Source: Macrostomum lignano (lineage: Eukaryota). Taken from it: a stretch of 64,000 nucleotides of DNA. How positions within the stretch are numbered: position 1 is the stretch's first letter; each line of letters starts with the position of its first letter. A program made the position numbers and the translations under genes. The stretch covers positions 1 to 64,000 of the forward strand of contig NIVC01000623.1 of assembly GCA_002269645.1 (NCBI GenBank), given 5' to 3'. Below, one piece after another: positions 33,601 through 36,980 of this stretch. The notes beneath the pieces are model-generated. The model had not been told where the DNA came from, ran no database searches, and worked only from the letters and a program-made list of their open reading frames with translations.

Positions 33601-36600
33601 GGGAATTCGGAGGGCTATTTAGGCACTCCCTGGGGGAATTCGGAGGGCTATTTTGGCACTCCCTGGGGGAATTAGGAGGGCTATTTGGGCACTCCCTGGG
33701 GGAATTCGGAGGGCTATTTGGGCACTCCCTGGGGGAATTTGGAGGGCTATTTGGGAACTCCCTGGGGACTTCGGAGGGCTATTTGGGCACTCCCTGGGGG
33801 AATTCGGAGGGCTATTTGGGAACTCCCTGGGGGAATTCGGAGGGCTATTTGGGCACTCCCTGAGAGGAATCTGAGGGGTATTTATTTGGGCCATTGAAGA
33901 CTGAGGGAATCGGAAAGGTATTCGGGCACTCCCTGGGGGAATTTGGAGGGCTATTTGGGAACTCCCTGGGGGAATTCGGAGGGCTATTTGGGAACTCCCT
34001 GGGGGAATTCGGAGGGCTATTTAGACACTCTTTGGAGGAATCGGAGGGGTATTTGGGCACAGGAGCTTAAAGGCCAAGACTGCTCCCATGACAAGTACTG
34101 CTTGCCATTTTCTAAAATTAGGCATGGGACAAACTGACAGAACCGCCCAGCCTGCAGCTCCATCCAACGCACGGATTCTGAGGCCCGCGCCAGCTGCTCC
34201 TCAGCCTTGAGCCGGTTCCCCGAGCAGTAGCGCAGCTCGGTCTCGTAGCACAGCCTCAGAAGGTGCAGCAGCTCGGCCGAGGCCGACAGTCCTCCAGTCC
34301 GGGCTCCGGCAAGGCCGCCAGCGTCGATAGCCGACGAGGTTGCCGACTGCTCCAACAGGGCGCGCAGGTGGGCGACCTCCTGCTCGGCCAGGGCCAGCTG
34401 GGCCGCCGCGTCCGCCTCTCCGTTGCTGCGACGCCGTTCGTGCGACAGCCGCCAGGCCCGGTCCTGCGGCAGTTGCGGAGTTCTGATGACAGACAGGCAG
34501 GCAGACAGGCAGACAGACAGACAGACAGACAGACACATAGACAGACAGACAGACAGACAGACAGACAGACAGACAGACAGACAGACAGACAGACAGACAG
34601 ACAGACAGACACATAGACAGACAGACAGACACATAGACAGACATACAGACAGACAGACAGACACATAGACAGACAGACAGACAGACAGACAGACAGACAG
34701 ACAGACAGACAGACACATAGACAGACAGACAGACAGACAGACAAACAGACAGACAGACACATAGACAGACAGACAGACAGACAGACAGACAAACAGACAA
34801 ACAGACAGACAGACAGACAGACAGACAGACAAACAGACAGACAGACAGACAGACAGACAGACAGACAGACAAACAGACAAACAGACAGACAGACAGACAG
34901 ACAGACAGACAGACAGACAGACAAACAGACAAACAGACAGACAGACAGACAGACAGACAGACAGACAAACAGACAAACAGACAGACAGACAGACAGACAG
35001 ACAGACAGACAGACAGACAGACAAACAGACAAACAGACAGACAGACAGACAGACAGACAGACAAACAGACAGACAGACAGACAGACAGACAGACAGACAG
35101 ACAGACAGACAGACAGACAGACAGACAAACAGACAAACAGACAGACAGACAGACAGACAGACAGACAGACACATAGACAGACAGACAGACAGACAGACAG
35201 ACACATAGACAGACAGACAGACAGACAGACACATAGACAGACAGACAGACAGACAGACAGACAGACAGACAGACAGACAGACAGACAGACAGACAGACAG
35301 ACAGACACATAGACAGACAGACAGACAGACAGACAGACAGACACATAGACAGACAGACAGACAGACAGACAGACAGACAGACAGACAGACAGACAGACAG
35401 ACAGACAGACAGACAGACAGACAGACAGACAGACAGACAGACAGACAGACAGACAGACAGACAGACAGACAGACAGACAGACAGACAGACAGACAGACAG
35501 ACAGACAGACAGACAGACAGACAGACACATAGACAGACAGACAGACACATAGACAGACAGACAGACAGACAGACAGACAGACAGACAGACAGACAGACAG
35601 ACAGACAGACAGACAGACAGACAGACAGACCCACCCACCTTAAGCCGGGAAATTTCCCTCTTGTAGGCTTCCTCCAGCCGCTGCTTCTCCTCAGCCGCTT
35701 TGGCACTCTGCTGTTCGGCGCTGGCCAGCCTAGAAAAAGAAACGGTCATTGAGATTGAGACTGAGAATTGGAAGCCGACCAGACTTCAGCAGGCCAATAA
35801 GCAGCAGTTTAAGCTGTCAAGCTGCCAGCTCACTTCTCCTGCAGATTCGCCAAAGACTTCTCGGCGTGCACGAGTTGGCTGGAGCGGCCAGCGAAGAGGC
35901 GCCTGTTGTGCTCGAAGAATTTCTTCTGCAAGCCGACCAGCCAGACGCCGCCGAGGCCCAGGAAGCCTAGCGTGGCCAGGAGCAGGTGCTGCAGCACCGA
36001 GGGCGGTCCTGCACGGTGAGGGTCGATTGTCTCATTGCCTCAATTACCCCAGCTAATGCTGGCACCCATTTTACAGCTGGTTGAACTGAAGCAATGCAGA
36101 GTTAAGCTGTCTTGTTCAAGGACACAAGTTGTTCCGAGTGGACTGAGAATCGAACCCCAAACCTTTCAGTCGTGACTCCGACGCACCAACCATAGTCCAC
36201 AGCCCCCTTCGCGGGTACACAAAATGAAAGAACTAAGGCTTAGATTTTCGTTCTACACCTTTTCAAACAAAAATAAAATTGCTATAAACGCGTGTGCATT
36301 TCGTGTTGTTCACAACTGGCCTGTCACTTGAGCGCAGCTTCTGCATGATGGAACTTCAACAGGATGGCGCTAGGTGACTGACTAAATTTATGGATTAACC
36401 CCGAGCACAAAGTACTTTGATGCGCTACCAGTGAGCTGAGTGTAGAAACAATTTGGACAACTCCTGCCTGCTCACTGCGGTTCGGTCCTAACAGCACGAG
36501 CTCGGTGGCTCGGGCCGCCAGCCGGCGTCGCTCCTCCGCCTCCAGGCCGGTCAGCAGCGGCGCGGCCGCAGGCCCATCCGGCTCAGTCAGCAGCGGCAGC

Positions 36601-36980
36601 TGCGGCCCGGCCACGACTCGGCCGATTGGCAGCTGGCGATGCCGGACAGTCGACGGAGCCAGCAGGTGCGGCTCGGCCCAGCGGTGCACCTCCTCCGGCG
36701 TCCAAGTTGACGCTGCCGAGGCGCGCCATAAGCGCCACAGGCGGACGGCGCCGTCCGGGTCGCCCAGCAGGCGGCGCACAGATTCCGGCAGGCCAGGCGG
36801 GCGTCGGGCGCAAGCAGCCCGCATGAGATCGTCATCGGCCCAAGCGGACCGGACGTCCTCCAGATGGGCGTGCAACCGAGCCACGGCCTGGTAGGCAGCA
36901 TCCTGCAGGGCCGGATCAGCTGCGACCACCACAAGCGGCAGCAGCAGCAGCAGCAGCAGAATGTCTTGTGCGCGCGACAT
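30658..36980 (-). CDS. STIM: Stromal interaction molecule (STIM) homologue with degenerate EF-hand (9 exons, about 671 aa)
   Basis: Exons 36980-36476, 36008-35834, 35729-35639, 34463-34173, 33000-32894, 32810-32683, 31657-31454, 31249-31087 and 31009-30658 join in phase. Signal peptide; SAM (WTPEEVHRW...[16 protein letters not shown] vs STIM1 WTVDEVVQW...RQKLQLKALDTVLFGP); TM GLGGVW; CC1 [12 protein letters not shown]; [14 protein letters not shown]...KQYTVMGVF...[18 protein letters not shown]; polybasic tail [10 protein letters not shown]. Confidence 0.92.
31885..32607. repeat. 64/65-nt minisatellite, about 11 copies (STIM intron 6)
   Basis: Unit GGTTGGCTGGATTCTGCTTGGCAATGAATACAGAGTGACACTGTGTACTTTCAGCCTTTGCTAC, no spacers. 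Confidence 0.95.
33125..34050. repeat. 33-nt minisatellite (GGGGGAATTCGGAGGGCTATTTGGGCACTCCCT)n (STIM intron 4)
   Basis: Tandem array; explains the [11 protein letters not shown] ORFs. Confidence 0.95.
34488..35630. repeat. (GACA)n microsatellite, about 1.15 kb, filling STIM intron 3
   Basis: Read directly; explains the VCLS ORFs. Confidence 0.98.
36040..36208 (-). mobile_element. CORE-type tRNA-derived SINE, 3'-truncated copy (STIM intron 1)
   Basis: Reverse complement matches the 52661 element: tRNA head (GGTTCGATTC) plus GTGTCCTTGAACAAGACA...CCAGCTGTAAAATGGGTGCCAGCATTAGC. Confidence 0.75.

Follow-up and report, generated by a model that had tools for sequence, protein, structure and literature searches.

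Can a STIM protein that has lost its luminal Ca2+ site still be a working part of store-operated Ca2+ entry? Such entry takes its defining input from the canonical EF-hand, and a gene of the flatworm Macrostomum lignano, here termed STIM paralog A, fails in exactly that feature. The gene occupies positions 30658..36980 of a 64,000-nucleotide stretch of DNA (the window; contig NIVC01000623.1 of assembly GCA_002269645.1, positions 1 to 64,000), and all its features lie on the minus strand. An earlier reading of the first exon, referred to below as the original prediction, had proposed a STIM homologue with a destroyed Ca2+-sensing loop. Our analysis leads us to favor, with somewhat better than even confidence, the view that paralog A is a functional, expressed, lineage-specific STIM without the canonical luminal Ca2+ site, likely a store-insensitive subunit. 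In short, it is probably a natural "calcium-blind" STIM.

Judged by homology that is far above chance, the window protein is a STIM by descent. The interval 36476-36980, in which the homologue had been proposed, is exactly exon 1, and its identity was borne out by matches in the PDB, by tblastn, by Pfam and by named STIMs. Exon 1 alone matches the structures 2K60 (human STIM1 EF-SAM) and 6PW7 (C. elegans STIM) at E=0.002 (phmmer, PDB only), and residues 38-223 of Taenia STIM match window positions 36896-36339 at E=3e-9 (tblastn). A HMMER search of 1.8 billion representative proteins returned 199 relatives of the spliced paralog A product, the best of them outside M. lignano being named STIMs of nemerteans, hemichordates, echinoderms and molluscs (E of about 1e-33 to 1e-31). 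The Orai-activating SOAR region is recognized by Pfam PF16533 at E=6.1e-20 and 71.5 bits, against a cut-off of 25.

Hydropathy and alignment give paralog A a type I membrane topology: a signal peptide and an EF-SAM-like lumen precede a single transmembrane helix, and the C terminus is cytosolic. The signal peptide (M1 to about A21; 36918..36980) forms the strongest hydropathy peak (residues ~4-25) and is followed, after only about nine residues, by the entering helix of the canonical EF-hand remnant (Y30-A56; 36813..36893), which comprises that helix, a degenerate loop and the exiting helix DDLMRAA. A hidden (non-canonical) EF-hand region with a conserved LWxxW motif (R59-S91; 36708..36806) and a divergent SAM domain (T92-G165; 36486..36707), the latter recognized through AlphaFold and Foldseek, complete the lumen. 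The transmembrane helix (V173-L195; 35929..35997) coincides with the second hydropathy peak (177-195) and leads into a basic stretch. The coiled-coil 1 (CC1) region then extends over the end of exon 2, exon 3 and the start of exon 4 (34173..35900), SOAR/CAD covers residues 318-418 in exons 4-6 (32726..34283), and the protein ends in a K/R-rich polybasic tail (30661..30753), read directly from the sequence, that is analogous to the plasma membrane-targeting tail of STIM1 and Schistosoma STIM. In the alignment CC1 keeps the equivalents of the clamp residues L251, L258 and L261 together with R304, E318 and E320, while SOAR keeps those of STIM1 L347, L351, Y361, A369, L373 and A376. The basic-patch equivalents K382, R385 and K386 are also kept, as are F394, V419, I423, R426 and R429. 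The original prediction had described the SAM, transmembrane and cytosolic domains as intact, which holds for the transmembrane helix, CC1, SOAR and the polybasic tail; for SAM it holds at the level of the fold only, as discussed below.

The canonical Ca2+ site itself is gone, its 12-residue loop having been cut to about eight residues without a usable ligand set. HMMER and a MAFFT alignment of 130 STIM luminal domains (128 others, spanning filasterean to vertebrates, plus the window protein and a near-identical duplicate) agree on a loop reading E41-D-V-R-S-A-W-A-D49, then a 4-residue gap, with D-D-L-M following; the degenerate, shortened segment is E41-D51 (36828..36860). At the same site the consensus of the other STIMs is L-D-D-D-x-[NDS]-G-x-[VI]-D-x-x-E-x-x-F. 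Relative to STIM1, D76 is changed to E, D78 to V, N80 to S, G81 to A and D82 to W, and E87 is deleted; that is, loop positions 3, 5, 6 and 7 are replaced and the Glu of position 12 (-Z) is missing. These positions tolerate almost no variation elsewhere: position 1 is D, position 6 is G and position 12 is E in 128/128 of the other STIMs, and position 3 varies only between D (126) and N (2). The window protein and its duplicate are the only two of the 130 domains to deviate, and the loss of about four residues and of the ligand positions claimed at the outset is thus upheld. Pfam PF25578 (EF-hand_STIM1) gives no match to paralog A at E<=1. The mean identity of the canonical EF segment to other STIMs is 27% for paralog A, compared with 51% and 50% for its sister paralogs B and C introduced below.

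We also looked for other STIMs with a loop that is degenerate but still in place, and the candidates fell away: among the 150 best representatives, each match without a loop is either a model truncated at the N terminus or an isoform that starts at 'FLRDEL'. In the predicted isoforms P0030 (Limulus X1), P0026 (Glandiceps X2), P0016 (Lingula), P0083 and P0059 of other animals both loop and signal peptide are missing and an alternative first exon joins at 'FLRDEL', directly after the loop; these proteins may be real and EF-less, or may be errors of annotation.

Structure prediction is in line with the alignments. An AlphaFold2 model of the paralog A lumen, built from a 27-sequence alignment, reached a pLDDT (predicted local distance difference test) of 85 and a pTM (predicted template modeling score) of 0.79. 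In it the entering helix (residues 4-28 of the construct) runs through the former loop into a 2-residue turn and the exiting helix, and no beta-bridge is present. This differs from the paralog C control, which with the same alignment gives a normal EF-hand pair, in which a 9-residue loop is joined to the hidden EF-hand by a beta-bridge at loop position 8. AlphaFold predicts five SAM helices in paralog A, and the top two PDB matches of the model in Foldseek are 6PW7 (probability 1.0, TM 0.59) and 2K60 (0.99). On the basis of this model the luminal fold is still recognizably EF-SAM, though SAM has strongly diverged: its mean identity to other STIM SAMs is 23.5%, versus 33% for paralog C and 47% for Taenia, and Pfam SAM models do not match paralog A at E<=1.

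Other parts of the lumen have changed as well. The N-terminal Cys pair (C49/C56 in STIM1; in 89/124 STIMs) is absent, and the N-W-[ST] sequon found in 113/137 STIMs reads TWT in the SAM domain. With the Cys pair and the sequon both absent, nothing positive speaks for the earlier suggestion that this protein responds to another luminal cue. The hidden EF region is 28% identical to that of other STIMs, against 30-32% for the sister paralogs, and the original prediction that it, too, is shortened proved not to be robust, as no gap appears relative to human STIM1 and a 2-residue gap appears relative to C. elegans STIM.

The gene that encodes this protein has 11 coding exons, with GT-AG introns throughout and consistent splice phases. 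Exon 1 (36980-36476) starts with the ATG at 36980-36978, ends at the GT donor A|GTGAGC (36476/36475) and codes for the Leu-rich signal peptide plus the EF-SAM-like luminal domain (~150 residues). It is followed by exons 2-4 (36008-35834, 35729-35639, 34463-34173), exons 5-8 (33000-32894, 32810-32683, 31811-31731, 31657-31454) and exons 9-11 (31374-31336, 31249-31087 and 31009-30658, the last including the stop). The assembled coding sequence of 712 codons contains a terminal stop only, its translation agrees with the P0001 sequence, and the 711-aa product equals PAA79632.1 / BOX15_Mlig030611g1. Tracing by frame and GT-AG sites alone yields 9 exons and 671 aa, to which PAA79632.1 is identical apart from two additional in-frame cassette exons. 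GenBank models of the M. lignano assembly derive from genome-guided RNA-seq (RNA sequencing) assembly (PMC5730564), so that transcripts back the paralog A gene and also its exon 1, for which such confirmation had been sought.

Both cassette exons, 31811-31731 (81 nt) and 31374-31336 (39 nt), are in the GenBank model, and one is missing from model P0169. The longer one codes for AVRWKLKTA, which resembles the 'ALWRRK' near the C terminus of cestode STIMs and of paralog B (NLWRRKTAEKFKRS), and this stretch may be a conserved flatworm STIM motif under alternative splicing. The exons at 36980-36476 and 34463-34173 have a G+C content of 71-72%, versus ~46% for the window and 51% for exons 5-6; Ala, Arg, Leu and Pro abound in the segments that exons 1 and 4 encode, and the composition of paralog C is similar.

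As the original prediction had supposed, paralog A is a paralog and not the sole STIM of this animal. Canonical loops are found in at least two other STIM families of M. lignano, B (DDDKNGAVDAAE), represented by P0189 (N terminus) and P0003-P0007 and including A0A1I8HH51 and A0A1I8FCW8, and C (DDDKDGSVDAAE), represented by P0011 (A0A1I8IKQ9) and P0188. When a neighbor-joining tree was built from 164 CC1-SOAR columns, 99% of 300 bootstraps recovered A, B and C as one clade, within which the branching order is unresolved (A+B 62%). The families B and C are the closest relatives of paralog A, with 46-51% identity in CC1-SOAR, and a GP[QH]LPLLTE motif in SAM is common to A and C. Unlike paralog A, both still have the Cys pair upstream of the EF-hand, and their loops read DDDK[ND]G[AS]VDAAE. 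Identity to other STIMs in CC1-SOAR is 29.4% for A, 29.7% for B and 29.4% for C, so that paralog A has diverged there like its canonical sisters, yet differs from them in the EF segment.

A general absence of the EF-hand from flatworm STIMs was considered and rejected, given that cestode, schistosome and monogenean STIM loops are canonical. It follows that the duplications are specific to the macrostomid lineage and that the loop was lost in A only. A second suspected loss, that of the position-12 Glu in paralog B, arose from the truncated model P0006, which starts 'TPRKLRGFAREEL', and was rejected when P0189 was found to carry DDDKNGAVDAAE immediately before the same GFAREELAYATDFER. The P0011 model (1988 aa) is without the transmembrane exon. 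No GenBank models of paralogs B or C turned up among the protein search matches, and the contig search found no contigs encoding the paralog B model P0003. At the equivalent of STIM1 F394, paralog A shares the Phe of the strong activator STIM1, and paralogs B and C share the Leu of the weak activator STIM2.

Paralog A is itself present in duplicate, and the comparison of the two copies indicates which parts of the protein have been held constant. The second copy, PAA92922.1 on contig NIVC01000037.1 (locus L001), has the same flanking genes (ITFG1-like and MPP6), and in unique intron sequence the copies are ~0.8% diverged (15/1840 positions). Each has an uninterrupted open reading frame (ORF; 711 and 713 codons, respectively), 11 exons and all splice sites intact. 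Over codons 91-432, from SAM through SOAR, we counted 0 nonsynonymous and 2 synonymous differences, when 6.2 nonsynonymous differences would be expected at the intron rate over the 756 nonsynonymous sites (Poisson P=0.002). In codons 1-90, which cover the signal peptide and both EF-hands, there are 3 nonsynonymous differences (D22E, E66D and V79G), 1 synonymous difference and an in-frame indel of 3 codons. Every nonsynonymous difference between the copies, like this indel, falls in the EF region or in the disordered C terminus. The pattern, in small numbers, is consistent with purifying selection on SAM to SOAR and with a roughly neutral rate in the EF part.

Our results lead us to propose how such a protein would work. 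In canonical STIMs, Ca2+ on the canonical EF-hand keeps EF-SAM compact, and Ca2+ loss or the D76A and E87A mutations bring about oligomerization and constitutive puncta (PMC4835918), in agreement with the constitutive activity of these mutants that the original prediction took as its starting point. STIM1 has extra Ca2+ sites of low affinity, which require the canonical one and are undetected in D76A (PMC11506743), and SmSTIM of Schistosoma mansoni, a flatworm STIM with a canonical loop, senses Ca2+ of the endoplasmic reticulum like human STIM1 (bioRxiv 10.64898/2026.08.03.742424). The luminal domain of paralog A would be without canonical reporting of store Ca2+, and, since the canonical site is lost, paralog A on its own would be blind to store content. 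Most likely it would still act within the STIM-Orai pathway, because the CC1-CC3 clamp and the dimerizing, Orai-binding SOAR are conserved, and most likely it would hetero-oligomerize with the canonical paralogs B and C and set the basal level or threshold of Ca2+ entry. Since clamp, SOAR and the membrane-targeting tail are kept and two canonical paralogs exist, a store-insensitive subunit would be the most economical model. With an EF-SAM resembling unstable apo-STIM1, paralog A would activate entry constitutively or at a basal level; with an EF-SAM locked into a folded, holo-like state, it would be a damping subunit. As to the direction of its effect, the compact, confident AlphaFold model and the conserved clamp are weak evidence that may slightly favor a folded, regulated state.

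Several points weigh against this proposal. For paralogs B and C there are only UniProt models from an older assembly, which are fragmentary, frameshifted or chimeric, and the expression of paralog A is taken from the way the annotation was constructed and not from read counts. Our selection test is built on very few substitutions, as the copies differ by ~1%, and AlphaFold is unable to tell a stable Ca2+-free fold from an unstable one. Moreover, an acidic cluster (E41, D42, D49-D51) is left at the site, which makes weak non-canonical Ca2+ binding conceivable.

On another reading, the cytosolic switch of paralog A would be fully functional but uncoupled from store Ca2+. It could be constitutively active, and be tolerated in particular cell types or serve them for store-independent entry, or it could be gated solely via heteromers with canonical STIMs or by a non-Ca2+ input. 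In both cases the STIM-Orai coupling machinery would have been repurposed in evolution, after the loss of a sensor that does not vary among the other STIMs we examined. We regard this as a possible though tentative alternative.

It is unlikely, in our view, that paralog A still senses Ca2+ via a non-canonical site, either in the acidic cluster, the five residues of which flank the shortened loop, or at sites of the hidden EF-hand or SAM. STIM EF-SAMs bind about 5-6 Ca2+ per monomer by isothermal titration calorimetry (PMC11506743; bioRxiv 10.64898/2026.08.03.742424), and Ca2+ binding is possible in EF loops of non-standard length (PMC11506743). However, the additional sites of STIM1 need the canonical one, as their disappearance in D76A indicates (PMC11506743), and in the segment in question the loop residues Gly-6 and Glu-12 are missing, with Arg and Trp nearby. 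Furthermore, AlphaFold predicts a helix at this segment and no EF beta-bridge, and the EF region evolves at a near-neutral rate between the copies.

We hold it improbable that paralog A is a redundant duplicate in decay, a STIM with a broken sensor that a polyploid genome tolerates and that has no specific role. The M. lignano genome carries large duplicated blocks (PMC5730564), the luminal domain is the fastest-evolving part of paralog A, and the nonsynonymous changes and the in-frame indel between the copies fall in the EF region or the disordered C terminus. Against this stand the intact 711/713-codon ORFs and splice sites of both copies and the lack of any nonsynonymous change at the 756 nonsynonymous sites of SAM through SOAR, where 6.2 were expected; on the strength of the same intact reading frames and splice sites and of this depletion, we judged a pseudogene unlikely as well. 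The ~50% divergence of A from B and C in CC1-SOAR points to an old duplication, yet the critical residues are kept; paralog A is no more diverged in CC1-SOAR than its canonical sisters, and its gene model is transcript-derived.

An assembly or annotation error, or an unrecognized canonical first exon, is highly improbable: it has no direct support beyond the frameshifted or chimeric older-assembly models of this family (P0002), whereas the identical loop is found at two independent Mlig_3_7 loci (the window and L001) and in an older-assembly model, for which reason an assembly error or frameshift behind the odd loop was rejected. Signal peptide, EF remnant and SAM all lie inside one continuous exon, and exon 1 is the sole match in tblastn with canonical EF-SAM sequences. 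An EF-loop motif scan of the minus-strand frames from 35.8 to 46 kb (~9 kb upstream) found none. The next gene upstream, MPP6, ends 1.65 kb away on the same strand, and more than half of this gap (36981..38626, up to the MPP6 stop codon) is filled by a tandem array of a 41-bp unit x 22 (37213-38141). With tblastn and the six-frame motif scan empty on the strand of the gene, an alternative first exon supplying a canonical EF-hand, which the original prediction had named as the finding that would speak against it, was rejected. The only strict EF-loop motif in the window (20184-20219, plus strand) is inside an ORF1-like ORF (19341-20918) just upstream of the reverse transcriptase ORF of a retrotransposon described below.

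The surroundings of the gene are rich in repeats. Upstream of paralog A, and likewise on the minus strand, follow a single-exon MPP6 homologue (38627-39484) and an ITFG1-like (FG-GAP/C2_ITFG1) gene (41004-45380), in the same gene order as at L001. The old gene model P0002 joins the MPP6 C terminus to paralog A, a fusion that may reflect a shared precursor transcript, M. lignano being a trans-splicing species. Besides the 41-bp array just upstream of the ATG, tandem arrays occur in intron 3 ((GACA)n, 1.14 kb; 34488-35630), intron 4 (33-bp unit x 28; 33117-34060) and intron 6 (65-bp unit x 11; 31889-32616), as well as between MPP6 and ITFG1 (20-bp unit x 36; 39572-40305), and array lengths differ between the two paralog A copies. 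An apparently intact non-LTR (long terminal repeat) retrotransposon, a long interspersed nuclear element (LINE), lies at 19341-24682 on the plus strand; its 1246-aa ORF codes for endonuclease, reverse transcriptase and RNase H and is preceded by the ORF1-like ORF of 525 aa. Intron 1 contains, at 36040-36200, a tRNA B-box-like motif (reverse complement GGTTCGATTCTC), and this stretch may be a fragment of a tRNA-derived short interspersed nuclear element. ARAGORN called no tRNA on the whole window.

The scope of this finding is limited to one lineage-specific paralog of a duplication-rich genome, known from sequence. Nevertheless, paralog A is a natural experiment on the non-Ca2+ roles of the STIM lumen, on clamp closure without Ca2+ and on the tuning of entry by heteromers. 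It is also directly testable, as M. lignano allows transgenesis and RNA interference and the assays required have already been applied to a flatworm STIM. A 2024 review of ~70 orthologs describes STIM Ca2+ binding as well preserved through evolution (PMC11506743). Our literature search found no paper on the paralog A gene identifiers or on STIM in Macrostomum, and no natural full-length STIM with a canonical loop that is degenerate in place.

Canonical STIMs (human STIM1 and STIM2, Drosophila Stim, C. elegans STIM-1 and Schistosoma mansoni STIM) have the same descent, topology, EF-SAM-like fold, CC1 clamp, SOAR and polybasic tail as paralog A. In contrast, loop positions 1, 6 and 12, which are invariant in them (128/128), are replaced in paralog A within a loop that is 4 residues shorter, and paralog A is without the Cys pair and the NWT sequon that are usual in canonical STIMs. 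SmSTIM is the nearest experimentally studied flatworm STIM and, unlike paralog A, senses Ca2+ by a canonical loop.

The engineered or disease-related STIM1 EF mutants (D76A and E87A; mutations behind tubular aggregate myopathy) resemble paralog A in that canonical EF Ca2+ coordination is lost and the rest is intact. They are point mutants, however, in which an apo-like EF-SAM unfolds and oligomerizes to give constitutive puncta (PMC4835918), whereas in paralog A the loop has been deleted and remodeled into a helix-turn, the whole lumen has co-evolved, and the change is naturally fixed beside canonical paralogs. With its lumen remodeled and co-evolved in this way, the resting state of paralog A could therefore be either 'on' or 'locked off'.

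STIM2 offers a further parallel to what we propose for paralog A: beside the main sensor, with which it forms heteromers, it tunes basal entry or threshold, as in the recruitment of STIM1 by STIM2 (PMC11506743). STIM2 keeps a working EF-hand of lower affinity, whereas paralog A has lost the sensor and kept SOAR. The STIM2.1 (STIM2beta) splice form, for its part, is an inhibitory STIM whose alteration lies in SOAR and not in the sensor.

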